In this document: positions 14,825 to 56,828 of the stretch, one piece after another | How the letters are laid out: every line of letters begins with the position of its first letter | How positions within the stretch are numbered: position 1 is the first letter of the stretch | NCBI GenBank assembly: GCA_029953675.1 | Contig: JAMWBK010000010.1 | Coordinates: forward strand, 62,001 to 126,000 | Origin: Rhodosorus marinus CCMP1338 | Lineage: Eukaryota; Plantae; Rhodophyta | Length of the DNA stretch: 64,000 nt | Direction: 5' to 3' | Notes under the pieces: generated by a model | What the model was told of the DNA's origin: nothing | Database searches by the model: none | What the model saw: only the letters and a program-made list of their open reading frames with translations | Translations under genes and position numbers: made by a program

Positions 14825-14898
14825 GCTTTCGTAGCTCAGTTGGTTAGAGCGCCAGCCTAACATGCTGGAGGTCCCGAGTTCGAGCCTCGGCGAGAGTA
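14825..14898 (+). tRNA. trnV-AAC: tRNA-Val (anticodon AAC)
   Basis: Cloverleaf: acceptor GCTTTCG/CGAGAGT, D stem GCTC/GAGC, anticodon arm CCAGC-CTAACAT-GCTGG, T arm CCGAG-TTCGAGC-CTCGG, discriminator A. A T-run just downstream fits a Pol III terminator. Confidence 0.95.
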
Positions 14899-16270: not shown

Positions 16271-19200
16271 ATGAGGGCAATAATCGGGTTGCGACTGCAT
16301 TCTCGCTCTCTGTCGTCGCTGGCGGTTGATACGAGCATCCCAGCGGCAGCGGAAGAGCTTCGGCTGGCGGTTGAAGGAACCAAGGGGAACCTTGTTCGGC
16401 TTTTGAGGCTGTTCGAGAACCGCAAGAAATGCATCGGAGTAAGAGATCAGAAGCAGGTAGGTGAGAGACATCCCTATAGTATGGCCCAACGAGACGACTG
16501 ACGTTCCATCGCGGGTTGAAACGGGTTGAAACGGGTTGAAATAGGTTGCTAAAGAACTGCTCCAAGAAACATCCAGAAGCTATGGGTCCATGACAACGGT
16601 TCAGCTTTTCAATTTGCTGAAGCGGGGAAGCCCTGCCTTTATCGTACCTGAACACTATGATCTGGTTACAGCAACCTGCGAACGGGCTGGCGATGCCACC
16701 TCGGCCGTGGACCTACTATCTGATATGTCTAAAAGGGGATTTGATCTCACACCAGCCGCAGTAGTGCAGACCGCTCATGTCGTCGCTGAACATGGTTTGT
16801 CACCAAGCCTTGCCTGAAACAGTAGTGACTGCGGCTGACTCACGCTAGATGGATTCCCATTCTAAACAAATGCCTCATGCAGGTGGTTCCTTGCAAAAGA
16901 AAACTCTCCTCAAGATGCTGGAAGAATTTGGACTGGCTCGCGATCCCCGACTCGTCCCTGCGTTCGTACACGCAGACATAGCGAAGGGCAACCTCGAAAA
17001 AGCTTGGAAAAGGTTCCAGGAGATGAACTCCAACCACAGACCTTTGCCACTCTACCAGGGTTTGATTCGACTGTGTGCTGAGAAGCAGCAACCGCGACTG
17101 CTAGAAGAGCTTGAACTGGTATGTGCGCGAAAGGATGCACTTCCTCTCGCTAGTTTTTGCAAGCTCTCAAGAGGTCGCACTTCCTTGCTTGCTAACACCG
17201 ATGTGTCAAAAAAAAAACCTAGGCCTTAAACCGCTCCAACAAGGTCACGGATAACAGCCTCCTCTTCGAATTGATGAAAGCTCATACCGATCTATGTCAA
17301 CTGGAGGTAGCGCATCTTCTTCAACAGTTATTTTATGCGTTCGAGTCATTGCCTTCCTAAAAACAGAATGCAATGAAGGATTGAACGGGAGGTCTGTGCT
17401 CCAGCTAAGCTTGCTTTCGCGTGTACCCTGTGCATAGGAGCTGAGTAGGTACTCCAGTATCATCGAACGACAGAGCCAAAAGTCAGACTCCAGAACCTAT
17501 TCGGTTCTGATGCGCGCGAATATCATTGCCGGGAAGTTCGATGAGGCGGAGAGCATTGGTGCATCTGTGAAACGAGCTGGGATACCCGAACAGCCTGAAT
17601 TCCATAGCCAGCTACTGCAGCTTCAAATTCGACAGGGGAAGATAAAGAAATCGGAACAGATAGATCAGTTCATGCTTGAGCAGAATGCCGATCAAAATCA
17701 TGCGGCTGTGCGATCTAGCAAGGTCTTTTCCCTTGCCATGCTTGGTGATAAGCAAGGTAGGCTCGCTTCCGGGAAGAAAATTCGGACTCGTTTGACTCAT
17801 GTTTTTTTTTAACCTGTTATGTTATGATGCTAAACTCATCCCCGGCCCCAGGAGTATCCCATCTCCTTGAGGATCTTGAAACCGGCGCCGACGTTCATGC
17901 TCTCAGCTGGAACGCCGCTATAGAGGGCTCAGCGCTGAATGGAGACCTTGTGTGGATGGAAGATCTACAATTGGAGGCGGAAAAGCGAGGGCTGAAAGTG
18001 ACGAAGCGCATGTATCTGAACCTTTTGAAAGGATACAGTCGAGCCGGAAAATTGGAAATTTGCCTGGACGTGTTGGACGAAGCCGTCAGGATGGGCTTGA
18101 ACCTCGGGGCTGAGCAGCACGCTAGTCTCGCAATTGCAAGGGCCCGCTGCGGGGACGTCCCCGGGGCAATAGAGCTGTGTGTCAAGAAGGCTTCTTGGTC
18201 TCGCGAAGCTGCAAATGCGATCTTGCTCGCGACTTCAACTGAGAATGAACGGGAAGCAAATTCTTGGTTTCAGCGGATGAAACAGAGTGTTGGAGTTGAT
18301 GACACTTCATACAACTGTATGCTCGACATGTATGCTAGCAATGGAGGTACGAGGAAAACTCACAAGTAGCACGAACCATTTCTTCCGGGCCGCCACTTGA
18401 GTTGTTGCTTTTTACGCCGAAGACTTGAGATTAGCAAACTCAGTTCATAGGGGCTGTCTTTTTTTGACTTTGGCCGTCGCACCTTCTCTCTGCTGAATCA
18501 CTCTTGCTTTGCAGATGTAGCAGGTATATCAGAGCTCGCAGAGCAAATGGCGGAGAACAGGAGGTCTATGGCGGAGACCATCAAAAAGGCCCTGTGGCGT
18601 GCACATCTCAAACGGAAAGACCACAAGTGGTTTGCAGAGCAAGTCGAGGAGATTGAAAAGGAGGGGAAAGAAGTACCCGCAGAACTCCTGCTTCTGCACC
18701 TCGAGACACTGTTGAAGAGCGGGCGGCATGAAGAGTTCTCGGTGGTTCTGGACAAACTACGATCCGCCGACGACGGCACCAAGCTCAACGCATACCACAT
18801 GCTGTTCCGCAATCTTCGTCATAGGCGTGCGAGCGTAGACAGCTGTCTCGCTCGTCTGCGGGAAATGGACGAGGAATTCTTGCGTCCCGACCTACAATGC
18901 CTAGACGAGATTGTTCTCCTCAGCGCAGAAGGCGATAGTGTTGGGGCTCTCCATCGTGTTCTATCGCACTTGAAGGTCCAATACAACCTCGCACCAAATA
19001 GAGCCACTCGACTGAGAGTCGTCAGGGCTTTGGTGAAAGCTGGACTGCATGCGAAAGTTATGCAAGTGTTTGATGAGATGATCCCCGACGAACCGGAAGA
19101 AAGCCATGTGCTACTGTTTGATGATGATCGACTGATTGCCCTCTGCTTAACGGATGAGCTGTTCGAAGCCAAGCAGTGCACGACCAAGCTGATGAGCAGT

Positions 19201-20605
19201 GGTGTCGATTTAATGAGCGATAGCGCGGCGGAAGCATTCATTTTGCTTCTAGCAAGGCACGGGGAGATGAAAGGTGAGGATGGCAATGAACGATTTTTTA
19301 GTCCGAAACCGAACAAGGGTGGTGCCCCGTTGAAATTTTGTGAGGCTCATGCATCTGAACTGTAGCCGTTCTCTACTGCCGCTGTGTAGAAGCGATGGAT
19401 TTCATGAAACAGCAAGCAAGGGTTTCACGTGTTCGAGCGAATGTCGTTTACAGTGCACTACAAGGCCAAGCTCTTGGCGAACTAAAAGCCACAACTCCGC
19501 AGAGGTGGGAGAGGCAGAGTTTTTCCAATGCACGAGACGCAGCATGGACAGCGATGGTTGTGAGATCGATTGGGACACAGTCCATGGAATCAATCGACCA
19601 GCTGATTACGGAGGTCGAAGAACACGGTGGCAAGATGGATCCTATCGCGTATCAACTTGTCCTGGAAGCCGCTGTTAAGGAGATTTCCAGTGTAACGTCA
19701 CTGAAGAGAAAAGTAGAGCTCTTCGACTATACCATATCCCTGCACAAGAGGATGAGGGACTCCAAGGTTCAAGAAACAGTGGACATGTATCAAATCTTGT
19801 TGGACCTGTACTCCTCCGAACCCCGTCAACCGAGAAAGCTTTTGTGTAAGTCAGAGCTGTTGTACTGCCCAGCCCCGCCCAACAGTAGTGGCAGTCCTTA
19901 CTTCACGGGAACAAGCGTTTGTTCTCATGCTTCATCTCTTGTCTCATGTAACGAACAGTGATTGAGAGAGTACCGGAGAGAATGAGCCTTGCCGGCCTTA
20001 CGCCCACTGACGAAATCTTGGCAGGGATGATCGTTGCTTTTGGGCGGCAGGGTGCATTAGACCAAGCTGAGGCGCTTTATTGGTCTTTGAAGGAGCGTAG
20101 TGCTGGAGTTACGCAGGCGATGATGAAGGCCCTTAACGGTGCCAGGAGATGGCAGGATGTCTTAACCATTTTCAAGCGAGCCACAGGTGATGGGGCAATG
20201 TCGAACTTGAACGAGTCAGCTCTGATTCAGGTAGTTATGGCACATGCCGATCACAAGAAGGACCCCGCAGGACTGCGAAAGTTGATCAAGGAGATGGAGG
20301 GCAGAGGTCTACCAGTTGGCGGGGCACTTCGAAGAGTATTCATTCGCGCCCTCGGGCGGTTGGGTGAAGCGGACGCAGCGTACGAGGAGACGTGCGCTAC
20401 GCTTTTCACGGATCCGCACGAAGTAGAGGAGCTTTTCAGGGCAGCTTTGCACAGCGCGCGATATAGGCCTGATTTGAAGCTTAAGCTACTTCGTCAATTC
20501 AGCATCAGATACCCTCGCAAAAATTGGGAGAGCTTTGATCTCTTCCTTGACCCGAATTCGATCGTAGAGCCTGAGGACTTTGTCGACGATGAAGCTGACT
20601 TGTAA
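16271..20605 (+). CDS. Large pentatricopeptide-repeat (PPR) protein with a mitochondrial-like presequence, multi-exon
   Basis: N-terminus MRAIIGLRLHSRSLSSLA. PPR-like repeats include WNAAIEGSALNGDL, MYLNLLKGYSRAGKLEICLDVLDEAVRMGL, SYNCMLDMYASNG and ILAGMIVAFGRQGALDQAEALY. Confidence 0.8.
16512..16541. repeat. 10-bp tandem repeat x3 inside the first predicted PPR intron
   Basis: cgggttgaaa repeated three times immediately before the AG acceptor at 16543-16544. Confidence 0.85.
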
Positions 20606-22351
20606 GAACAGAGTTGATGACAACTAATGAAAATATCGTTCCAATGCGACGTGTAAATAAAGAAGGCTTCTTCGGCTGCGAACACAGCTCCCAAGTTCAA
20701 AGCCCGCCACAAAATATACCGCCAAGGTCATGAGAGTATATACAAACACGCAAATCAAGAAGGTTGTTTTTCACGCAACAAACACGGCTCATTTTCAGCA
20801 AGAAAGCGGCGGAGGCTCCGTGAATGAACGAACCATAGCGCCATGCCGACGGCCCGGCAACATCCTTCTTTCTTGGGAAAGTGAAATCAGAAATACCCTC
20901 GGGTCATATTTCTAACTGTGCCAGACGAGCATCTATCAAGTTTTTTGATTGATTCCAGCTTTTCGTTCACAACCTGCCCGCTGTTCATTCATGCAGACCC
21001 CCGCTTGGTGTTTACTGGAGCAGTGTCAGCCGAGATCTGTTCGTTTTTCATCCGGTTTATTGTAATCAGTCCTATTTCATTCACATGTATATGCCCAGGA
21101 TGGTGGGAATGGGTGGAGGCGTTACGATAGACTGGATGGTGGATGGTGGGGGATAGGAGCGAGATTCAACTTGAGTGTTGACTAGTTAGCTTTGTTGGCT
21201 GCATCAACCAAGTGCTTGGAGTTCTACTCCGGTCTTGGTAGGCCAGTACCAAGCGATACATAAGTTTCCCATGGTCACAGCCTTGCGGATTCCCCTCTCA
21301 AAAGCAATAGATTAAAACCCATGAACTGATCCTGCTATCTCTCTTTCAAGCCCTTACTTCCTCAAAAGGATAAAACAGAAACCTAGGACCTTGGTAATAC
21401 AACTACACCAACCAAAACTCCCCTCGCGTTTTGGAAAACGCTGTGGCCATGGAGGCGTACAGCTTACAAAAGCGGACTTTCCGAAGGCTTCGCGCTCTCC
21501 TCACCCGCTCTCACTATTCATTCAAAAAAGAGGTGTTCTTCCAACGGAGCACCCACACCACTTCAAATGACCCAAAATGGCTTTTCTTTTTAGTCCATTC
21601 ATCAACATCCAATCAGCTCGATTTGTGAAATTCTCCAACTACCAATCCCTATCCAAGATTCTTCAAATATATCAAATAATATACTAAAATACATATTTGG
21701 TTGGCCCGAAATCCAATCACCGCCCCTGGTAAACACCTTTCAAGATCAAGAAATAGGGTCTTAAAATATGACGAGTTCCAACAAATCGAGTTCGTCCGTG
21801 GTCATCATTTTTTCTCCAAATTCCCAGATTGACAAAAATATTCATAATCATGAGATTGCACCACATGTTTATTTAATTTTATAAATAAAATGGCATTTGA
21901 AATGTGCATAATTATGACCTTGGATTTTTTTGTGGCCTTGGCTGGTCGTTTAGTAGAATGCTTGATTGGTTGTTACTTTTTCTATAGATGCAAATATGAA
22001 GACGCTGAAATGGATCAATTCTCGATTTGTCCATTGCTGTTCTGAGCACAGAGATGGAAGCCACCGCGCCAGGTTTCTCATACGGGAGGATGCACGCCTC
22101 GGCGGTACTTTATCTGAAGTAAGCAAGGCTGGAGTGGATATAAGGATCAATCGAACGTACTGATTGAAATAGATAGAGAAACGGGATCGGCGATTCGAAT
22201 GATTGTTTGAATTTGTGGGTTAGCACATCTCCGAATGGGAAATCTGAGTTTGGTTTTGGTTTGCTTTGGGACCGGATATGGATCTGTATATAAAAAACAT
22301 TGTTGAACTCCAGGATAAGGACCACCGGATTCCTGTTGAGTGTGTAACGGG

Positions 22352-25300
22352 ATGAAGGCGGATATGGACTGTGTAGGATCTGGTAGGTCCATTTGCTTTC
22401 TTGGAGCGTTGAATGTTGAGATGATTCGGAGGCTCGTTCAGAGAAGACGCGGAGCCTGGGTTGCGGCTAGGAAAGGGCGGTACTTGTCAAGTTTGAAAGC
22501 GACGTTCACAGTCGATACGGACTTGGAGCCCACCGCGGATCAGCCACAGGCAATTGATGCCGCGTCGGAGTACTTGAGGGGTAACAATTTTACCCTGCTG
22601 AAGGGAGCGACGGGGACAGGCAAAACCTTTGTGATGGCTCATACCATCGCTCGCACTAAGAAACCGACATTAATTCTCTCGCACAACAAGACTCTAGCCG
22701 CTCAGCTAGCAAGAGAACTTCGATCCTTCCTCCCGAACAGTGCTGTGGAACTGTTCATCTCCTACTATGACAGCTTCCAACCCGAGGCCTACAACCCAAA
22801 GTCCGGTACCTACATCGCCAAGTTGGCCACTGTGAACAAGGAGATCGATGCTCTCAGGCATCGAGCAACAAAAGCCCTAGTGGAGCGCGAGGATGTCGTT
22901 ATAGTGGCATCTGTTTCATGTATTTATGGACTCGGACTGCCCAAAGAGTACCTGCAGTCTGTGAAACATTTCGAGGTTGGACAAGTCATCACCATGGAGG
23001 AGATTGTAGCTCAAGTTCAGGAGCTCATGTACGAAATGGTCAGGACGCCACTAGACCTCAAGCAGGCGTGTTTCTACTCGACGGGCTCGGACGAGATTTC
23101 CGTTTGGCCCCCTTACCTCAGTGCACCGATTCGAATTGCCCTGGAGCACGGTACGATTCGTTCCATCCTGGCCCTCGACACTCGCGAGTTTCATGGCAAC
23201 ACGCAGCTGGCCTTCCCGGATGCGGGCAACGTCTCAACAAACGACAAGAAACTTGTTCTGTATCCCGCAAGACACCATGTCACGCCAGAATCTCGTCGCG
23301 AGGAGGCAGCGACGAGAATCCGCGCGGAGATGGAGCACAGAGTGGAGGAGCTCATACAGGAGGGCCAAGGCGATGCGGCTGAAAGATTGCGAACAAGAAC
23401 TACTGAAGACATGAAAATGTTGGAGGAGCTGGGCTTTTGTGCGGGGGTGGAGAACTACTCGAGGCATCTCGCACTCCGTGACGAAGGCGATCCTCCAGAC
23501 ACGCTGATCACGTTTTACAACGAGGCTTTCGGAGCAAAGAAGTGGCTGCTCATTGTTGACGAGAGCCATGTAGCACTCCCGCAACTCTGCGCGATGTATC
23601 GCGGCGATCGCAAGCGGAAGGAAACGCTGGTCAGGCACGGTTTCAGGTAAGGGCCTTACCGGGCGAGAAGCCACGTTGGTGAAGTGTCCATGGCGCTCTT
23701 ATCTGATCTCGACGTTCATTAACGCTCTGCGCAGGCTGCCTTCGGCTCTGGATAACCGCCCTCTAAAGGAATCCGAATTCTGGGACATGATCGAATCAGC
23801 TATGTTTGTGTCTGCGACACCGAGCAAGAAGGAATTGGCAATGTCCAAACACAGTATTGTTGAGATGGCAATTAGACCCACCGGGGTCATGGATCCCAAG
23901 ATCGAGATTGCGAAAACCGAAAATCAGCTCGAACAAGTCGTTCGGGAGGTAAGGACTGGGGAACACATAGAGTCGGGCTCGCTTACAGAAGAGCATGCGC
24001 AGATCGTTCTCACGAGCTCCAATTCGTTTTGCTCCGGACAGATTGGGGACAGAGCAGAGAGGGATGAGCGGACACTTGTGATGGCAATCACGAAGCGAGA
24101 TGCAGAGGACCTCGCGGAGTATCTGCAAAGCAGAGGAGTGAAAGCCGCGTACCTCCATTCTGGCTTGAAAATTGTGCAGCGGTCTGAAGTAATCTCAAGA
24201 CTTCAGCGAGCTGACATTGACTGCATTGTCGGGGTGAATCTGCTACGGGAAGGAATAGACCTCCCGGAAGTATCCCTTGTTTGCATTATGGACGCGGACA
24301 AGCAAGGGTTTCTGCGGTCCAAGTCCAGCCTGCTTCAAATGGTTGGCAGGGCGGCGCGGCACGTGAATGGTACGGCCGTTTTCTTCGCGGACAAGACCTC
24401 GCCGGCGATGCGAGAATGTATGGCCGAGACAGATGTGCGCAGAGCAAAACAGCTTCGATATCTCGTTGAGAATGACCTACAGCCGACTTCCGCGAGGGGA
24501 AGGGAAGTCGCCTCGATATTCGAAATGGAGAAGGAGAATCGAACGGATGGCGAAGTTGATGGAATGGACTGGGAAGCGGTATCACGAGCTCTCGAGGAGC
24601 ACAAGCAGAGGAAGAGAGCGAGTAAGGATGACAACCTCTCCTCGAATGGTAATGCAAAAGACGGTGACGAGGAAAAGTCTTTACCACGCTACATGCCGGC
24701 CCACGTGGCTAGCTTGAAACAGCAAATCAAGTCTCTGCCCGTGAAAACTGGAGTGTACATGTGGAAGTCGGGTAGTGACGAGGACGCGGAGATCTTGTAC
24801 ATAGGAAAGGCGAAGAACTTGAGGTCCAGGGTGAGCTCGTATCTTCGAGAAACGGCAGTTACCACTCGAGGGACACGCTTGGCGGCCATGCTTAACCGTG
24901 CCAGAACTATAGACGTCGTGGTGACCCCTGGAGGAGAACGAGATGCGCTGCTGCTTGAATCTGACCTGATCAAGAAGCACCGGCCACTGTACAATGTGTT
25001 GCTCAGAGATTCGAGGTATTATCCGTTTATTGTGATAACGGAGAAGACAGACAAACAGCTGCCAAAGCTTATGACCTCAGTTCGTTCGGACCTGGAGGGG
25101 GCCCGGTACTTTGGCCCGTTCACGTCACCTGCAGCACTCCGGAGAGTCATAGAACTCCTCGAGGCAGCGCTGAACTTGAGGCACCTGAGATTCCAGCTTC
25201 GTTTTGGTGGTGAGAGCGTTGAGGGGGAGTACTTGGAAGCGGTCGCAATGGCAACCAGAATTTTAGAGGGAGACACTCTTAGCGTGGCTAGGGAATTGTT

Positions 25301-25946
25301 CGAGCTTGGCCGGGAGCAATCTGCAAGAATTGTACTTGCTATCAACAATAGAAGCGTTGACGAGGACGAGAATGCTCGGAGCTGGAAACGTGTTCAAGAG
25401 AATGCAAAAGCAGCCAGAGAACTCTCGCAGCTGTTCGACATACCTAAAATTCCGAGGCGGATCGAGGCCTTTGATATCAGTCACTTTTACGGTCAATATA
25501 CGGTGGCAAGCAGAGTGGTTTTCCTCGATGGTGAGCCAGCACGACATCTGTATCGAAGCTACAAGCTTGAGCAGGTCAACGATGACTTCAGCTCCATAAA
25601 CAAAGCCGTATCAAAGCGTTTGAAGTCCAAGGAGCAGCTACCTGATCTGATGATAATTGACGGAGGAAAGGGACAGCTCAGTGCAGCTGTGAACGCAATT
25701 AAGGATGTTGGGAGTGTGGACGAGTTACGTGTGTGCGCCATTGCGAAGCAGGAAGAAGAAATAGTTGTGCCCGGACAGCTTAAGTCCCTAGATACCAACA
25801 TCGAAAGCGCTGCCATGCTTCTAGTTCGGCATGTTCGCGACGAGAGTCATCGACACGCAATCTCAAAGATGAGGAATGCGCGAAGGGATGTGTTTCTAGA
25901 AGATGCCAATTTATCTGCCCAGTCAAAGCAAAGTGTTGAGGACTGA
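22352..25946 (+). CDS. uvrB-uvrC: UvrB-UvrC fusion excinuclease (about 1137 aa) with an N-terminal organellar targeting-like extension; introns 23647-23734 and 23949-24041
   Basis: UvrB motifs: GATGTGKT, NKTLAAQL, YYDSFQPEAY hairpin, VDESH, GFRLPSALDNRPL (restored by splicing), VSATP, NLLREGIDLPEV, QMVGRAAR. These run in frame into UvrC motifs: GVYMWK...YIGKAKNLRSRVSSY, IEAFDISH, IIDGGKGQ, RDESHR. Confidence 0.93.
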
Positions 25947-29137: not shown

Positions 29138-30223
29138 ATGAGCTTGCTCAAGGAGCTGAGCGCAGGTCTGAGCGTGGTCCGAAAGGCCTGCCTTATGGCT
29201 GTAAGGGTCCGGCAGATGGCTAGTGAGGGCTCGGTATCGAAAGCAGATAAGAGCGCGGTAACGATTGCCGACCTTGCGATCCAGGCAAGTGCGTTGCAAG
29301 AACTCACATCATTGTTTTCCGAGGATTCTTTCATTGCGGAGGAATCGTCATTGACGTTGAAGGGAAAACCTGAGCTTTCTGCGCTGGTGCGGGAAGTGCT
29401 TGTAAAGGAAGGGTACGAACTATCGGAAAGCCAAATTCTCGCAAACCTTGACAAAGGTGGCGCGTTGAGCACTTCCGGAAGAGTTTGGACCCTTGATCCT
29501 GTTGACGGAACTAAGGGTTTTATAAGCGGCGGTCAGTACGCTGTGGCCTTGGCGTTTCTCGTGGATGGATTTGTAGAGATCGGGATCATCGGATGTCCTG
29601 CTCTTCCCGACACACTGACCGGGAGTTCTCGACGAGTTGGGTCGATTTTTTACGCTGTCCGAGGACAGGGCGCAATGGAAATCGGCCTAGGCGATGTTTC
29701 CGGAGAGGACCTTAGAGCTGACGATGATGCACCCATTCGCGTAGTTGAGGCTGCCGAAGGCAACTTCACCTCTTACGCCCACTCAGCATTCGTCGCTTCA
29801 ACCCTCGGCTGGGGTAGTGATCCTCCTGTACGCATGGATTCGTGTTGCAAGTATGCTGTGATCGCTAGAGGAGAGGCTTGCTCCTTCATCAAGCAGCCAA
29901 AGGTCTCATACGTCGAGAAAATTTGGGACCATGCAGCTGGAGTGTTGGTACAGCTCAGTGCAAATTCATATGTCTGACTATCGTGGCATGAACAATAGAC
30001 TAAACGCCTGCTCCCCTGTGCAATCGTGTAGATCCTCACGGAAGCTGGTGGAAAGGTGACGGACGGTTCCGGTATACCCTTCAACTTTAGCGCAGGAAGA
30101 CAACTGAATCTCAACAACAGGGGAATCATTGCCTCAGCAAGTGCCTCACTCCATGGTGAAATTCTTAATGCGATTGACGAAGCAAGGGAGGCCTTGGGGG
30201 ATACGTCGGACGAGGAACAGTAA
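29138..30223 (+). CDS. SAL1: 3'(2'),5'-bisphosphate nucleotidase (SAL1/HAL2/MET22 family), one intron
   Basis: KADKSAVTIAD, FIAEES, WTLDPVDGTKGF, EKIWDHAAG, then after the intron ILTEAGGKVTD...GIIA. Confidence 0.92.
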
Positions 30224-37426: not shown

Positions 37427-39747
37427 CCTTATCAACGCCAGTCGAACCGACTATTAGGAAAGAACAAGAGCCAACCCCACCCCTACCCCTAATGAAACGA
37501 AGCAACTGTGCTCCCTCCTACGCACTATCATCGCTCCTTTTGCGCCCACTGTGTCCTTACCCCAGAATAGACTTCGGGTACCATTGCCGAAGAAGCTGTC
37601 TTTCCTCGCTCTCCCTCTCACGTCAACTATGAATCAGCAGTTGGATGCCAAACACTGGGGAACACTCCTATTTTCAATGAAAAATGGTATATTTCAAATG
37701 TCATATTCTTAACGGCTATTTCAATCAATTGTTTCTTGTAAATCATTTTCAAGTTGATTGAATCTATTCGAGAACTCGCAGGGCCTCCCGCGCTAGTTTT
37801 GGTAGCAAGCTCATGTGAAGCGCTGAAACGTGAAGAGTTGATGTACATCCTGTACCTCGAATCAGGAGCTAGGTGATGCCTATTTTCATACGGACGGGTG
37901 TTCTTCCGCGTTTACAGTGCCCATGCGGCTTGTACGCAAGCCCCGCGGCGGCCCCGTAGCAGAGATGGCACCAGTGACCTGTGTGAGCCGCTCTTGAAGG
38001 AGCGAGGTGTTATGACCTATTGCGGCCGAGTATCAGCTGTCGCGGGAAGACAACCCTCTGAACTTGGAAGCCAACGAGTGTTGAAGAAGGGAAGTGCGTT
38101 GTTTTCGCGCTCAGGAAATTGTCGGACTCTTTTGAGGTTTCATCCGTTGACGAAGATATGAAATGCTTGAGAAAGAAAAGAAAAAAAGCCATCCAACGTG
38201 CCATGCTAGACTCCAAGACATAGGTTCCTCCTGAAAAAGGGAATGGACGGCTAGCAAATATTATATATATATTATGTCATATATGTATTAGATATTGCTC
38301 ACTATGGAAACCGCTGTGGAAAGCCGCAGTTCGCATCAGTTTCCTACACTGCCTAGAGACGCCATACTCTGCGACGAGTGATGAACTACCCGCACAGCGT
38401 TGATCCTCGGTTTGAAACTGTAAATTTTTTTGATGTGCTTCTGATCTCGCTCTCCGTTTCCTCAAATATACTCAGATGCATGCTGCGTGCTCATAAGGAA
38501 TGTGTAGTAAGAACGATTCCTGACTAGAGCTTCTTTGCCTAGCTTTGACACCCCAACTGCTGGGTGTGGGTGGGGGGGGGATAAGCCCTTGACATGGTTC
38601 TAAAATTGGAAAAAGTTCACCTCACCAGTTCGAGAAAGACTAAATTTTATTTGAAATACATAGATCCCCTCCATGCCCAACGCTGTAGGGGGTTTTGAAA
38701 TTGATGAACGAAATATTGTGCCATAATCGGACCCGATCCAAATCTTCTGTGTCATATCTTTTTTATAGAGTAGTATAGTAGGGGTCATGATTTCTCCGAA
38801 ATACCTGTAAGATTAGTTAAAAACGGGAGAAAAAGAATTCCACAGTGCTCACAAGGGGGTGAGTACACTTCACTCTAAAGTCTTGGAGAAAGGTTGAGGG
38901 GGGGAATGAGACAAACAAGATTAGGTCGAGGTACGAAATATGAACCCCGATGAGGGAAGTCTCTCCATAACAGAGGACAAAAACACTTCAAAATACTACA
39001 CAAAAGAAGAACAAGCTATGGTTGAAATATTAAAATATATCAGCCATAGACAATTTTATTTCATCTATTCAATAATATATCACCTAAAAATAGATGATTC
39101 AAGTTTGTCACGTTCGGAAGGGTGGGGGTGTGTGGTAACCCTACTGCCAAGATGCGGAGAAGAATCAAAAGTTATCCTAAATGGACCGGCCCCTAATGGT
39201 CTTGAAAAGTATCGAATTCCAGAGCAAGGAGGAATGTATTCTCTATCTTGGGGTTAACAGAGTGACGATTTTCTTTTTAGGGAGACCCGGGGCGGGGGGG
39301 GGGGGGGAGAAGGAGTTTGACTGGCGGGGCAAAAAAATAACATGTTTTTGAAACGTTTTTTTTTTTTGGGAGGGTTGGGGACAACTATGATGGGGTTTGT
39401 TGGTATTTTTGTGAGGTTTGATAAAGAGGAGGGGGAAAGGAAAACGAAGGTGCGAAGAGTGGGGGGGTGCACACACCGACGTGATTTACATGTTGTGTTG
39501 GAGGGGGGATTGTTTCGAGCGCCTGCTTGGTGGGGATAGGGAGTTGATAATGTATTGATGAGAAAGGGAAAGATGGATTATGAAGAGGGAAGAGACGCAG
39601 TGAAGTTGTTGCTTTGTTGAGATTTTGATTAGCGGAGTTGTCAGGTGTGAACACGGGGGGGTGGGAGGTTTGGATTTCACTCTGCTATATATATTTGGTT
39701 TTGGGGCTGTGGTGGGAGGTTTTCGTCAGCGGGTTGGGTTTGAGGGA

Positions 39748-40689
39748 ATGTTGGGCGTACGAGTTGGTGGTGGACCGAAGGAGGGGAAGAAAGTGGAGTG
39801 CAGTCAAAGCGTGTTGCCGATGGAAAAACGCCGACCACCGGGGTTGACTTTGCCGGATAGAGGTGAGTTTGCGGTGCTGGTGCGCTCGGCGAGGGAGGGT
39901 CGAGATTGCGCTGAGCTTTCGGAAGGAGCGGATGGGGTATGGTGGGTTGTGTCTAGACAGGGAAGGTCGAGATCTTTTAACGAGGATGCGGTGGGTATTG
40001 TAGATGGAAAAGGTGTTTTTGCTGTGTTTGACGGACATGGCGGGAGGAAAGCCTCCCAGTTTGCTAGTGAGCACCTCATAAGACACTTCGAGGCACTATC
40101 GCATGGCGAAGTGGATATGCAGGAAGCGCTCAAACAGGCCTTTGTTAAGACTGACGAGGAATTTTACAACGGAAGTGGATCCGCAAGAGAAAAGTACGTG
40201 GGAACGACCGCCATTGCTGCAGTGCTCAGAAACGGGAAGCTGGTGGTAGGACACGTCGGAGATTCTCGCGCGGTGCTGGCGTCAAATGGAAAAGCAGTGG
40301 AACTCTCGCGAGATCATGTCACCTCAAGGGCAGACGAACTGAACAGAGTCAGGGCAAACGGTGGTTACATTCTTGGGGACCGAGTGAATGGAGTATTGAA
40401 AGTGACGAGAGCCATTGGTGACCATCCAGCAAAGAGCTTCATAATTGCGGAGCCGGAAGTTCTGGAGATGGAAATCGCAGACTGCTTTCAGTATTTAATA
40501 ATTGCATCCGATGGACTCTGGCAGCACTTCACGAATGAGCAGGCAGTAGAATTTGCGTGTAAGTATGGAAATGATGTGAAGACAGCGGCCCAAATGTTGG
40601 TGGAAGAAGCGCAGACGAGAGGTTCCTGTGACGACATAAGTGTACTTGTTCTTTCTCTGGAAAACTTCAAGAAAAAGAGTGAGGAATGA
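39748..40689 (+). CDS. Protein phosphatase 2C (PPM family), single exon; start uncertain
   Basis: NED, FAVFDGHGG, GTTA, HVGDSRAVL, VTRAIGD, IIASDGLW, SCDDISV. Confidence 0.93.
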   Translation: MLGVRVGGGPKEGKKVECSQSVLPMEKRRPPGLTLPDRGEFAVLVRSAREGRDCAELSEGADGVWWVVSRQGRSRSFNEDAVGIVDGKGVFAVFDGHGGRKASQFASEHLIRHFEALSHGEVDMQEALKQAFVKTDEEFYNGSGSAREKYVGTTAIAAVLRNGKLVVGHVGDSRAVLASNGKAVELSRDHVTSRADELNRVRANGGYILGDRVNGVLKVTRAIGDHPAKSFIIAEPEVLEMEIADCFQYLIIASDGLWQHFTNEQAVEFACKYGNDVKTAAQMLVEEAQTRGSCDDISVLVLSLENFKKKSEE

Positions 40690-40823: not shown

Positions 40824-41549
40824 TGGGGAGCAAGCATTTTTAGTTTGACATGTATGACTCAACAGTCTACCAAGTTCTGTTTTTTTATGAGGCTTCGGGA
40901 GGTCTCACAGAAGAACATCGTTCCGATGCGGAGTTTTTTCCTGCCTCGTGTGCGTTTCATGGGCAGGGGAAGCCAACTAACAGCTTGTCATTGATTCTTG
41001 TATTTAAGAAAACACTGTGGAGGGAAGATTAAATTTTGAAGGTACTCCCCACCTAACCCCCCAAGCCGGGCTTTATGAAATGCAAACAACTAAAACCAAC
41101 TTTGGGGTTGGCGTTGAAAACCCCGCAACACGATAAAAGCCTCCGAACGGGGATTTCTCAGCGTGTGGTGGGGAGCTGATAAGGAAGCGTTGTGGGCGAG
41201 ATTTTCCTTTCCCGAACAGGCTTTGACAGATTTGCCGTCTAAGTACGCTAACTCACGACAACGTAGCGGCTCTTTCTATGCTATTCTCCATTGTTTTTTT
41301 TTATGGCATTGGGCCAGTACTCGTGGACAGCTGCGTAAAATCAGGAGTCAATTTATTCCGCAGTAGGAGCAGTACGCTGCTGCGTGTGATATTTGAAAGA
41401 TCATCCTTTTCGCGAGCAGGACTGCCCGGTAGTGAGGCTTTAAGAGCAAGGAGCGTACACGCGCAGAGATTATTTTGCTTGCTCAGACCTTGGCAATGGC
41501 GTAATAGCCAAACAAGGATCAGTTGCAGAATTCAAGTTTCAAAGATGTG

Positions 41550-41619
41550 TCGGGGCAGTATGGGGTTGTGAACTCAAGTTTGGAAAACGTCTCGGGGTAG
41601 TATGGGGTTGTGAACTCAA
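41550..41619. repeat. 28-bp direct repeat, period 42, overlapping the SIMPL gene stop codon
   Basis: tcgggg(c/t)agtatggggttgtgaactcaa at 41550 and 41592. Confidence 0.85.
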
Positions 41620-42694
41620 CTTTCTCCCTGATCTGACCCAATCTGAAACACAGCCTCGATTTCCGCAACGACCTTGGTCACAGAGAAATCGAGCTTGAGG
41701 GAGCTTGATTTCTCCTGACCATCTTCAGCCTCCATATCCTCAGCCATCATAGCCATCGGCTGACGATGCATAGAATAGCCTCGGGACGCTTCGGGTGATC
41801 GAATTTAGTGATTTGACTCAGCGACAACGCAAAGGTGCTAGGGCGATTTGTGCGGCTCACTTTCAAACTTACGATTCTCCTTAATCCTCAGCAGCCTACC
41901 TCTCGTAGTCCCTGCTCCTCCGAGAAGGTCATCAACCTTCCCTATAGCGTTCTGGACAGCTTTCAGTCTGGCCTCGGTTTCGAACTTGCCGATATCTGAA
42001 ACTCCGAGATTGAAGTCCTCAATCCGGACGTCGTCACCACCTGTCTGGATAACCTATGGAAACCGGCCAATGACACAGGTACATATCAGCCCGAACCTCA
42101 GTACGGGTCGTTGGGATCACCCTTTTTCTTCTGCACCTTACCTCGTCCATAACCTTGCCCCCCTTTTCAATGTCCGCAACATGTATCCGGAGTCTGTTGA
42201 AGCAGGAATATCCGTCTACGTAACTCCTAGGAGAAGTTGAGAATTTTGAGATAAGCGCTTCTTGCGATGGTCGTATTTTACAGCACATCATTAGCTTACT
42301 TTCCAGTCCGCCGACTGTATTCGTATACGGGGTAGAGGCCAAACCCTACAGTCGACACGTCCGGAGCGACAATTCCGAGAGTGGCCAGCTGATCGATGAT
42401 CCTCTGCAACGTATCCAAGCTGGTCTTTCAGCTCTTGTTAACAAACAAAGCGTTGCGGGGCAGAGCAAAACCTACATTTGTTACCACGGCTACGAACTCT
42501 TTCGCTTCCTTACCGCTTTTGGAGCGCTTCTCGACGTTTGCATTGAAGACAACCTCATCTGGTGGTGCGTCGACCACACCCTTTCCTTGCACTGTAATCC
42601 GAGGGACAGTCTCAAGAAGCGCTGCATCAGACAGCACCTCCACTATCCCGAGACTGAAAAAGCTCAACGCAAGAATCCAACTCTTCACCACCAT
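41616..42694 (-). CDS. SIMPL/DUF541 domain protein with a signal peptide, multi-exon
   Basis: Signal-like MVVKSWILALSFFSLGIVEVLSDA, then ITVQGKGVVDAPPDEV, EARLKAVQNAIGKV and the terminal strand KVVAEIEAVFQI. Confidence 0.75.
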
Positions 42695-55135: not shown

Positions 55136-56828
55136 ATGGGTTTTGTGGGGGTATTTGGTGGTATTACGGGGTTTCGAAGGGGAAGGGCGTTGTGCGTTGT
55201 GCCGGAGCTGACTACGGATATCGCAGCCGGGAGCCTGCCAACGGACGAAAATGGACGAGTGCTGTTGAAAAACTTGTCCCGGACACAGCTGGATGACTTT
55301 GTCACGAGCCTTGGAGAGAAGCCCTTCAGGGCTGCGCAGCTTTGGAGGTGGATGTACCATCCCGACAGCTTGGTTGGAACATTTGAAGAGATGACAGATT
55401 TGAGCAAAGCCTTCCGAGCAAAACTTGAGGACCACTCTCGAGTGGATTCCTTAACCCTGAACGACACTCACGTCGCAAAAGACGGAACTAGAAAAATCAC
55501 TTACAAACTGGAAGACGGTGGCATCATTGAATCCGTCTGGATTCCAACGAATGACAGGGTCACGCTCTGTATATCGAGTCAGCTCGGATGTGCGCTGAAC
55601 TGTCAGTTTTGCTTCACCGCCAAGATGGGCCTGCGCAGGCATCTATCCTTGGGGGAAATTGTGGACCAGGTAGTCCTCTCAAAGCGCTTTTTCGATGACA
55701 AGGACGAGACCGGAAAGCGTATTACGAATATTGTCTTCATGGTTGGTTTCCCCTTTAGTCTGTCATCACCGGATGGGTTCCAGCTGGTTGACAATCGCTT
55801 CACTTGTCCAACTCTGTCTAGGGAATGGGAGAACCCCTCCACAACACAGAAAACGTCATCCAAGCGACAAACATTCTCACGTCAAATAAAGGACTTGGAC
55901 TCAGTCATAACAAAGTTACGGTCTCGACGTCTGGATTGGTTCCCGAGATTGTGCGGTTTTTCAAGGTAAGGGCAGGCCTCTCACCAATCGGATTTTCGGC
56001 AAGGACTCTTCGTTCGCGCAAGGTCTTATGGACATTGCTTGTCCTTCTCCACCCCACCCAGGAATCACCGGCGAACCTGGCAGTTAGCTTGAACGCCACT
56101 ACGGATGAGATCCGGGACTGGATCATGCCGATCAACAAAAAGTATGATTTGGCATCTCTGCTTGGAACATTGAAAACCGTTGTACCAAGAAGAGAGGACG
56201 GAAAGGCCCTGAAAAAGGTAATCGACACAGGTTTCTCGGGATACCCATTTCGTGTGGGAGTGAAGACTGCTGAAGCTTTGGCTTGCTCGCTGTCCGCTTA
56301 AGCCCTTAACTGATGTTTTTTGGTTTGCTTGGTTTCTGCCCCCGCAGATTTTCTTCGAGTACGTCCTGCTTAAGGGAGTAAACGACACGATGGACGACGC
56401 CAAAAGAATCGTAAAGCTCACTTCCGGAATTCCGTGCAAGGTAACGTTTCCGAAACCGATTGAGGCACCTTATGTCGTCGGTGGTTCGACCGCATTTGTT
56501 CCCGACAACCTGAGGGAGGGATTTGCTTCTGATTCCCGGGAACTCGTTGCGCATGGATCAGGTTAACCTCATTAGCTTCAATCCACATTCTGGTACGGAG
56601 TTTGAGCCTTCCCCACCGGAGACCATGGAAATGTTTAGTCGGTACTTGGCGTCCAAAGGTGTCAGAGTCACCGCTAGAGCAAGCCGAGGGGACGACGAGA
56701 TGGCCGCTTGTGGCCAGTTGGGAAAACCTGGTGACAAACCGAGTCCTCCACGGACCAAGATTCCTCCGACGTTTGAGGGGAAGGTGAAGGGAGGCAGCAC
56801 TAAAAGGCGAGTGGGGAGGAACCCATGA
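55136..56828 (+). CDS. rlmN: RlmN-family radical-SAM RNA methyltransferase, probably plastid-targeted, multi-exon
   Basis: [14 protein letters not shown] (CxxxCxxC), NIVFM|GMGEP, TVSTSG, LAVSLNA, FEYVLL, AACGQL. N-terminus MGFVGVFGG. Confidence 0.93.

Follow-up and report, generated by a model that had tools for sequence, protein, structure and literature searches.

In bacteria, UvrB and UvrC are two separate polypeptides that together carry an ATPase core, a β-hairpin, a GIY-YIG nuclease and an RNase H-like nuclease. Domain 2 of UvrB is the site of association with UvrA, for which the residues R183, R198, E215 and R223 have been named, and the UVR motifs have a docking role by which UvrC is recruited to UvrB (PMC3458569). 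In UvrC, a Cys-rich iron–sulphur (Fe-S) motif was defined after the GIY-YIG domain, and an RNase H1 domain was described as a platform (PMC10085695). Reduced forms of this machinery are also on record. E. coli UvrBC complexes were found to locate UV lesions without UvrA and to help uvrA-mutant cells survive (Springall et al. 2018, PMC5814901). D. radiodurans UvrC engineered to lack its helix-hairpin-helix domain, UvrC-Δ(HhH)2, still makes both incisions, of which the 5' cut is weaker (PMC10085695). A 2006 census of GIY-YIG proteins lists no eukaryotic UvrC (PMC1564403), and a 2020 review stated that organelles seem to lack nucleotide excision repair (NER) and that genes for UvrA, UvrB and UvrC are missing in flowering plants (PMC6981420). 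Here we describe a gene of the stylonematophycean red alga Rhodosorus marinus that joins UvrB and UvrC in one chain. It lies on the plus strand at 22352..25946 of a 64-kb stretch of contig JAMWBK010000010.1 (1.69 Mb, assembly GCA_029953675.1); this whole stretch of 64,000 nt is called the window below, and positions refer to it.

The fusion gene probably encodes a single-chain excision nuclease of the bacterial type that is directed to the plastid. Its two parts would be held together by a covalent tether instead of by docking between UvrB and UvrC, and it possibly works without UvrA. The ATPase core, the GIY-YIG and RNase H-like nucleases and their catalytic residues are the same as in the bacterial, and specifically the cyanobacterial, UvrB and UvrC proteins, and the β-hairpin is present with only part of its tyrosines kept. 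The fusion differs from these in being one polypeptide instead of two, in having no UVR motif, no Fe-S cysteines and no (HhH)2 and, in Rhodosorus, no RNase H1 domain. It is furthermore nuclear-encoded, with introns, an N-terminal leader and a remodelled domain 2.

Spliced translation of the coding region gave three exons and a protein of 1137 aa ending at a TGA codon (25944–25946). The joined coding sequence (22352–23646, 23735–23948 and 24042–25946) is open over its 3414 nt and starts with the ATG at 22352, with a further ATG at 22364. On the plus strand, two long open reading frames (ORFs) stand head to tail at 22340–23650 and 23676–25946. Exon 1 (22352..23646) encodes aa 1–431 plus 2 nt of codon 432, and exon 2 (23735..23948) ends at aa 503. 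Both introns, GTAAGG…CAG, showed the donor AG/GTAAGG and the acceptor CAG/. Removal of intron 1 (23647..23734, 88 nt, phase 2) is obligatory, because its length, not divisible by three, shifts the frame and because a TAA in frame follows the donor at 23648; its excision rebuilds the universal UvrB motif GFR↓LPSALDNRPL, in which the arrow marks the exon junction. Intron 2 (23949..24041, 93 nt, phase 0) is in frame and stop-free, so the letters alone do not force its removal. Only when intron 2 was removed did the protein align without gaps to B. caldotenax UvrB and to the relative P0241, and the deposited NCBI model likewise omits it. We therefore favour removal of intron 2 on the basis of homology, in agreement with the deposited model. 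If intron 2 stayed in the message, 31 aa would separate E503 from I504, where UvrB domain 3 begins, and an isoform of this kind is possible.

The end of UvrB, the linker and the entire UvrC part are encoded by exon 3 (24042..25946) within a single ORF (23676..25946). As the UvrB–UvrC junction lies inside this ORF, the fusion does not depend on the splicing prediction and is no gene-model artefact. The spliced product was identical to the deposited 'hypothetical protein NDN08_003753 [Rhodosorus marinus]' of NCBI (100% identity, 100% length). The neighbouring genes are eukaryotic and encode an isoleucyl-tRNA synthetase (IleRS), a pentatricopeptide repeat (PPR) protein, an inositol phosphatase, a carbonic anhydrase and KTI12. 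An earlier note on this DNA had proposed that one spliced frame joins UvrB to UvrC and that the gene is nuclear and eukaryotic and no contamination. Both proposals were confirmed, the former by the spliced translation, the position of the junction inside one exon and the identical deposited model, the latter by the two GT-AG introns, the 1.69-Mb contig and the eukaryotic neighbours. Judged from its sequence and setting, the fusion gene is ordinary nuclear DNA and, as far as the gene structure indicates, a functional nuclear gene.

The UvrB core with domains 1a, 1b, 2 and 3 comprised aa 52–660 (22505..24512, split by both introns), with predicted local distance difference test (pLDDT) values mostly above 85 in the AlphaFold model. 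The NCBIfam UvrB profile NF003673 matched aa 52–693 with 736.1 bits (E 3.5e-221), corresponding to profile positions 2–627 of 653. Alignment of the UvrB part to the solved structures 2FDC/3UWX gave E values of about 1e-162, and identity to cyanobacterial proteins was 45–50%. Pfam matches in the fusion protein were ResIII, Helicase_C, UvrB, GIY-YIG and UvrC_RNaseH_dom. The equivalog cut-offs for UvrB were narrowly missed, with 736.1 bits against 743 for NF003673 and 725.4 bits against 750.1 for TIGR00631, because the protein has no counterpart to the last approximately 26–40 profile positions, which represent domain 4, and diverges in domain 2. The missed cut-offs probably explain why the protein was deposited as a hypothetical protein. 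The earlier note had spoken of a full UvrB; this description was too generous for a protein without the C-terminal domain 4 (UVR) and with a remodelled domain 2. The AlphaFold model of the whole fusion reached a pLDDT of 83.3 and a predicted template modelling score (pTM) of 0.71. Its confident modules were UvrB, GIY-YIG, the helical bundle and the RNase H-like domain, and its low-confidence parts were the leader, the domain 2 insert, the linker and the tail.

Conservation was assessed among 57 fusions for the UvrB half and 56 fusions for the UvrC half, with 41 cyanobacterial UvrBs and 78 bacterial UvrCs for comparison. The Walker A motif GATGTGKT (22604..22627) contains K91, and this lysine was present in all 57 fusions and all 41 cyanobacterial proteins. 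The Asp and Ser of the Walker B motif (motif II, VDESH, aa 402–406, 23555..23569) were kept in 57/57 fusions, and motif VI, QMVGRAAR, was intact in Rhodosorus and conserved in the same 57. The β-hairpin (SYYDSFQPEAY…, 22760..22837) was located by alignment to B. caldotenax UvrB. Its residues Y92 and Y93 are kept in Rhodosorus, Y95 is Ser and Y96 is Phe.

In place of UvrB domain 4, which carries the UVR motif, the fusion has a linker of 64 aa (aa 661–724, 24513..24704) with 16 D/E and 11 K/R, and aa 670–718 of it were predicted to be disordered in the model. A charged linker had previously been claimed at about 24480–24735, close to the limits mapped here. Detection of UVR motifs was based on two custom hidden Markov models (HMMs), one from the UVR of bacterial UvrB (the 41 cyanobacterial UvrBs) and one from that of bacterial UvrC. 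UVR motifs were undetectable in all fusions searched, with scores of at most 6.4 bits with either HMM, whereas bacterial controls scored 36.1–72.8 bits with the UvrC-derived and 11.5–95.8 bits with the UvrB-derived HMM. The Rhodosorus protein scored −3.5 bits (UvrB-derived) and −2.3 bits (UvrC-derived) and had no PF02151 match, and PF02151 was listed for no fusion in the domain listings of the homologues. The occupancy of the UvrC UVR-helix columns in Rhodosorus was 0.48.

Two unfused red-algal UvrBs served as natural counterparts. Like the fusion, the UvrBs of Porphyridium purpureum (P0274) and Cyanidiococcus yangmingshanensis (P0436) are nuclear-encoded, carry an N-terminal extension and are closest to cyanobacteria by distance; unlike the fusion, they have no UvrC attached and keep the UVR motif, with 37 bits in P0274 and 24.7 bits in P0436. 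Their N-terminal extensions, approximately 380 aa in P0274 and approximately 220 aa in P0436, had no Pfam match. The UVR motif was present in UvrB that stands alone and gone from every protein that joins UvrB to UvrC. This pattern is the strongest argument that the covalent tether replaced UVR–UVR docking, and we infer from it that the tether would substitute for docking in the fusion.

Domain 2 (aa 196–306, 22937..23269) was remodelled and contains an insert of approximately 13 aa with low model confidence (aa 283–295). The Pfam profile UvrB_inter stayed under its cut-off of 22.9 bits in Rhodosorus (21.9 bits), compared with 117.5 bits in the cyanobacterial UvrB P0093, and it was missing from the precomputed domain lists of nearly all fusions. 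Mean pairwise identity in domain 2 was 0.35 among the fusions and 0.74 among cyanobacteria, a ratio of 0.47; the corresponding ratios for the other domains were 0.68–0.86, which makes domain 2 the least conserved part of the family. Rhodosorus shared 26% identity with the cyanobacterial consensus in domain 2 and 49–68% elsewhere. The length of the domain was 101–180 aa in fusions and fixed at 99 in cyanobacteria.

The residues of the UvrA-binding face were affected individually. R194 was Arg in 41/41 cyanobacteria and in 0/57 fusions, and R183 was Arg in 41/41 cyanobacteria and 10/57 fusions. N184, D185, G197, D198 and E201, invariant in the 41 cyanobacterial proteins, were varied or replaced across the fusions. 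In Rhodosorus, R194 corresponded to Tyr, R196 to Thr, E215 to Ala and R223 to Ser, and the equivalent of R183 was ambiguous, as two alignments differed. R213 was kept in Rhodosorus and in 33/57 fusions. Three residues, W203, P205 and P211, were newly conserved in domain 2 of the fusions, which indicates a changed constraint on the domain and not an absence of constraint. The loss of UvrA-face residues could mean that the fusion is loaded without UvrA, a reading that we put forward tentatively. The unfused Cyanidiococcus UvrB keeps the UvrA-docking domain (UvrB_inter, 55.8 bits), so that the Uvr system of some red algae may be closer to the classical one.

The UvrC profile TIGR00194 matched in two stretches with 288.9 bits, barely above its cut-off of 285.45. 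The GIY-YIG nuclease, the 3'-incision module, was located at aa 725–830 (24705..25022) by alignment to 1YCZ/1YD6 and gave a Pfam GIY-YIG score of 25.1 bits. Its residues Y742, Y756, K759, R766, E809 and N821 correspond to Y19, Y29, K32, R39, E76 and N88 of T. maritima UvrC. The RNase H-like endonuclease, the 5'-incision module, was located at aa 945–1125 (25365..25907; PF08459, UvrC_RNaseH_dom, E 4.8e-41), and its DDH triad D981, D1043 and H1106 aligned to the catalytic motifs of 2NRT. The earlier reading that the GIY-YIG and RNase H-like residues are intact was thus correct, since all residues listed there align to catalytic positions of solved structures.

Between the two nucleases, aa 831–940 (25023..25352) form a short β motif and a helical bundle, a remnant of the UvrC middle region with no Cys-rich Fe-S motif and no detectable UVR or RNase H1 platform. 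The four Fe-S cysteine columns were 100% conserved in the 78 bacterial UvrCs and absent in 56/56 fusions. Three of the four cysteines fall in a deletion, and the region after the GIY-YIG domain contains no cysteine in Rhodosorus. The RNase H1 platform (PF22920) gave no Pfam match in Rhodosorus. The occupancy of the RNase H1 columns was 0.19 in Rhodosorus and P0241, 1.00 in the other, diatom-type fusions and 0.99 in bacteria. The (HhH)2 domain was absent in all fusions, with HhH2 column occupancies of 0.06–0.18, and no HhH Pfam match was obtained in Rhodosorus. Most fusions end approximately 16 residues after the RDExHR motif, compared with a bacterial median of 76. The Rhodosorus protein ends approximately 31 residues past RDESHR (aa 1102–1107 of 1137), and its C-terminal tail of 12 aa (25908..25943) stands where bacterial UvrC carries (HhH)2.

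The UvrC part of the Rhodosorus protein is therefore without four usual modules, and by its domain content the enzyme, with the loss of Fe-S, (HhH)2 and, in Rhodosorus, RNase H1, is what would be a minimal version. The engineered UvrC-Δ(HhH)2 of D. radiodurans resembles it in having no (HhH)2, and because this truncation still carries out dual incision, the domain is dispensable in principle; it still has its Fe-S motif, its UvrB-binding helices and its RNase H1 domain, modules that the algal protein lacks, and its 5' incision is partly impaired (PMC10085695). Cho and the Cho-exonuclease fusions are likewise UvrC relatives with reduced or altered domains, some of them fused to repair domains, but Cho is bacterial and a 3'-nuclease only, and none is joined to UvrB (PMC1564403). 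That the loss of the oxygen-sensitive Fe-S cluster was a fit to an oxygen-producing organelle is an attractive idea and pure speculation.

The N-terminal leader (aa 1–51, 22352..22504) is absent from bacterial UvrB and is a putative organellar presequence. It contains 8 R, 3 K, 3 D/E and 5 S+T in 51 aa (Ser/Thr 10%), and P0241 carries a similar basic leader. Of the Arg/Ser-rich extension described in the earlier note, the Arg part stood (8 R) and the Ser part did not. The pLDDT was below 50 at aa 1–21 and 26–43, and the model contained a helix at aa 19–45; in the hydrophobic-moment analysis the amphipathic moment of the leader was not above that of shuffled sequences. Rhodosorus has a primary plastid, for which only a transit peptide is needed. 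A signal peptide followed by a Phe/Trp junction, the ASAFAP-type motif, is typical of import into red-derived complex plastids. In 41 of 58 relatives with complete N-termini, a hydrophobic signal peptide was followed by an [A/S/G/C]↓[F/W] junction and then by a basic, transit-like stretch with few acidic residues; 16% of shuffled leaders passed the same bipartite test. Examples of the junction were GVSA↓FSAR, SALA↓FSTR, SYA↓FLPAR (Chromera) and GA↓FAAP. The organellar destination proposed earlier is thus plausible, and the leaders of the orthologues (41/58) point to the plastid; the Rhodosorus leader itself does not discriminate. On the evidence of the orthologue leaders, we favour the plastid as the likely destination.

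The first homologue search returned approximately 75 proteins with UvrB plus UvrC-type domains, 67 of them with both UvrB and RNase H-domain motifs. Fusions were found in the diatoms Cyclotella, Seminavis, Cylindrotheca, Pseudo-nitzschia, Nitzschia, Thalassiosira, Mayamaea, Epithemia, Amphora and Thalassionema and in the chromerid Chromera velia. In an exhaustive scan of 1.84 billion cluster representatives, the family comprised about a dozen clusters at 50% identity. One of these includes the green prasinophyte Pycnococcus provasolii, which encodes a fusion of 1333 aa with the same UvrB-then-UvrC domain order (P0423; cluster representative P0265), which shows that the fusion is not restricted to red-lineage plastids. 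The Rhodosorus protein, of which a copy stands in the databases already, is thus not unique: many diatoms have the fusion, and it occurs also in Chromera and a green alga. The relatives are usually labelled 'excinuclease ABC subunit B' or 'hypothetical protein' in the databases. One complete MMETSP transcript, P0241, encodes a protein of 1133 aa that shares 66% identity and the compact architecture with the Rhodosorus fusion, and the complete MMETSP transcripts P0006, P0040 and P0243 encode full-length fusions of the diatom type. These transcripts are the best available evidence that both halves are contained in one message.

Phylogenies were inferred by neighbour-joining (NJ) only, which is rough, and each half was treated separately. 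The fusions, about 60 or more relatives in diatoms, Chromera and a green alga, formed one clade in trees of the UvrB half (bootstrap 100/100) and of the UvrC half (50/50), with support of 66–76% under wider sampling. Unfused red-algal UvrBs fell outside this clade, and the Rhodosorus type was not nested within diatoms. All algal UvrBs formed one clade (97%) when Cyanidiococcus was left out. The Pycnococcus fusion was placed among complex-plastid algal sequences, which may reflect gene transfer or poor resolution. A further compact fusion without RNase H1, P0262 (994 aa), falls in another of the 50%-identity clusters, is 43% identical to the Rhodosorus protein and was present on 24 contigs of up to 75 kb. 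The compact forms Rhodosorus, P0241 and P0262 were not monophyletic (0%), and since P0262 did not group with Rhodosorus, RNase H1 may have been lost more than once.

A protein of the haptophyte Prymnesium parvum, P0272, was sister to the fusion clade (NJ 74–84%). Its RNase H-like nuclease lies at aa 118–256, UvrB at 454–1066 and an HRDC domain at 1109–1175, and it has no GIY-YIG. Like the fusion, it combines a UvrB core with a UvrC-derived RNase H-like nuclease in one chain; unlike the fusion, the nuclease is N-terminal, GIY-YIG is missing and HRDC is C-terminal. The named stand-alone UvrBs among the best database matches were all cyanobacterial, and by distance the nearest non-algal UvrB was cyanobacterial for all five algal UvrBs tested. 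The database search with the UvrC half listed bacterial UvrCs at approximately 213–232 bits together with fragments of fusions; the full-length fusions were not listed again, though they were expected to be the best matches. In the phmmer ranking of named bacteria, the cyanobacteria Phormidium, Roseofilum and Microcoleus stood high for several UvrC-half queries, Bacteroidetes were sometimes first, and the scores were compressed. In the simplest history, both genes would have come from the cyanobacterial endosymbiont; after their transfer to the nucleus, uvrB and uvrC would have fused a single time and then travelled with plastids of red origin.

In the mechanism that we propose, the leader would bring the protein into the plastid, as suggested by the bipartite leaders of the diatom and Chromera orthologues. 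The UvrB motor, in which the ATPase motifs and the β-hairpin are present, would clamp the DNA and verify the lesion. The disordered charged tether of approximately 64 aa would take the place of UVR–UVR docking. The tethered GIY-YIG domain would then cut on the 3' side and the RNase H-like domain on the 5' side, as their intact residues suggest. Loading would be UvrA-independent or would use another partner, given the lost UvrA-face residues of domain 2. The two bacterial precedents, UvrBC acting without UvrA and UvrC-Δ(HhH)2, make such a stripped-down design plausible. E. coli UvrBC resembles the model in being a unit of UvrB and UvrC that locates lesions without UvrA (PMC5814901), but it is non-covalent, UVR-dependent and a minor back-up, whereas the fusion would have a permanent link and has a UvrA face that is not conserved. 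The earlier description of a self-contained repair machine goes too far, because a UvrA encoded elsewhere may take part and because later helicase, polymerase and ligase steps are needed anyway. A stronger version, in which the fusion is a minimal, UvrA-independent and Fe-S-free excinuclease that performs true plastid NER and the Rhodosorus form is its smallest natural version, is possible but doubtful.

Several observations weigh against parts of this model. The missing RNase H1 platform makes the geometry of the 5' cut uncertain in Rhodosorus. Tyr95 of the β-hairpin, which is Ser in Rhodosorus, is replaced by His in 34/57 fusions, including most diatoms, and lesion verification may change accordingly. 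Domain 2 is remodelled, not lost, and UvrB_inter still scored 38 bits in the green-algal fusion; a UvrA-like or other partner for domain 2 is possible. The Rhodosorus leader, poor in Ser/Thr and no more amphipathic than shuffled sequences, does not discriminate between plastid, mitochondrion and dual targeting. A clade of cyanobacteria plus algae was not recovered in the NJ trees (7% and 1%), so the cyanobacterial origin of the UvrB half rests on match ranking and distances, and the comparisons made with the UvrC half point to no single bacterial source.

The fusion might also belong to a classical three-component system, in which it merely tethers UvrB to UvrC and an organelle-targeted UvrA finds lesions and loads UvrB. 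UvrA is described as the main damage sensor in bacteria (PMC5814901). The fusion protein still has a domain 2, which is modelled as folded with pLDDT values mostly above 85 apart from the insert; R213 persists in Rhodosorus and more than half of the fusions, and UvrB_inter was detected in the Pycnococcus fusion and in the unfused Cyanidiococcus UvrB. We nevertheless regard this explanation as somewhat unlikely, because R183, N184, D185, R194, G197, D198 and E201 of the UvrA face, all invariant in cyanobacteria, are varied or replaced in the fusions, the length of domain 2 varies widely, and UvrB_inter is below the cut-off in Rhodosorus and missing from nearly all fusion domain lists. The loss of the NER interfaces (UVR, UvrA face, (HhH)2, Fe-S and, in Rhodosorus, RNase H1) would also fit a new function as a helicase-guided, structure-specific nuclease for maintenance of the plastid nucleoid, acting at stalled forks, at R-loops or in DNA turnover. 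Such a function would agree with the replacement of Tyr95 in most members and with the related Prymnesium protein, which combines UvrB with HRDC, a domain otherwise typical of RecQ-type helicases. It appears improbable to us, since both nuclease sites, the β-hairpin and all ATPase motifs were kept together in every member sampled. This joint conservation across red algae, a green alga, Chromera and diatoms is as expected under selection on coupled verification and dual incision.

The Rhodosorus protein may act in mitochondria or in both organelles and not in the plastid alone. An Arg-rich helical leader low in acidic residues is also typical of mitochondrial presequences, and the Rhodosorus leader is Arg-rich, low in Ser/Thr and acidic residues and modelled with a helix; dual targeting is furthermore common for organellar DNA-maintenance proteins. 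The signal peptide and Phe/Trp junction of complex-plastid type in the diatom and Chromera orthologues, the closeness of the UvrB half to cyanobacterial UvrB and an amphipathic moment no higher than in shuffled leaders make this destination unlikely. The possibility that the locus is an artefact, whether a bacterial contaminant, a chimera made in gene modelling or a pseudogene in decay, is effectively refuted. It would draw on the bacterial ancestry of the domains and the narrowly missed UvrB cut-offs and on nothing more; against it stand two canonical introns with identical GTAAGG donors, the long contig with eukaryotic neighbours, the junction inside one ORF, the intact frame, the kept catalytic residues and the complete transcripts in relatives. 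A single-chain, plastid-directed UvrB–UvrC nuclease thus remains the explanation that we prefer.

Eukaryotic nuclear NER (XPB/XPD, XPG and XPF–ERCC1) follows an analogous logic, in which verification by a helicase is followed by dual incision. Unlike the fusion, it uses unrelated proteins in a multi-subunit machine that acts on nuclear DNA. The modules and the chemistry of the fusion are those of UvrB and UvrC; it stands out by being a single chain, by its eukaryotic and probably organellar setting and by having lost interaction modules in a coordinated way. No paper describing a UvrB–UvrC fusion was found in the searchable full-text literature, which leaves most subscription journals outside its coverage, so that this absence is no proof. 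The main text of an ochrophyte plastid-proteome paper contains no mention of Uvr or excision repair (PMC5462543). If a plastid-directed enzyme is conserved in red algae, a green alga, diatoms and chromerids, the view that organelles have no NER would be overturned for much of the phytoplankton. It would also help to explain how plastid genomes cope with UV damage in the dark, and if the fusion performs true plastid NER, this pathway would be the first of its kind demonstrated in an organelle. The family can be viewed as a natural experiment, which suggests that UVR, (HhH)2, the Fe-S cluster and even RNase H1 are dispensable once UvrB and UvrC are tethered. It would offer a single-polypeptide system for structures of the pre-incision and incision states, and as fusion-bearing diatoms are genetically tractable, plastid excision repair is directly testable in them.

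Six ORFs of at least 250 aa were found in the whole window. Two of them are exons of the fusion gene, whose exons are therefore unusually long for the window. Three others, long exons or ORFs on the plus strand, had Pfam matches to inositol monophosphatase (29138–29977), protein phosphatase 2C (39625–40689) and the N-terminal domain of the rRNA methyltransferase RlmN (55136–55969), and the ORF at 18547–19365 had no Pfam match. The neighbouring PPR gene occupies 4335 nt for 1143 aa. A tRNA-Val gene with the anticodon AAC was located at 14825–14898 on the plus strand. A local GC-skew peak of +0.30 at 38001–40000 overlapped the start of the protein phosphatase 2C ORF, and a 42-nt tandem repeat with 2.3 copies was present at 41528–41624.

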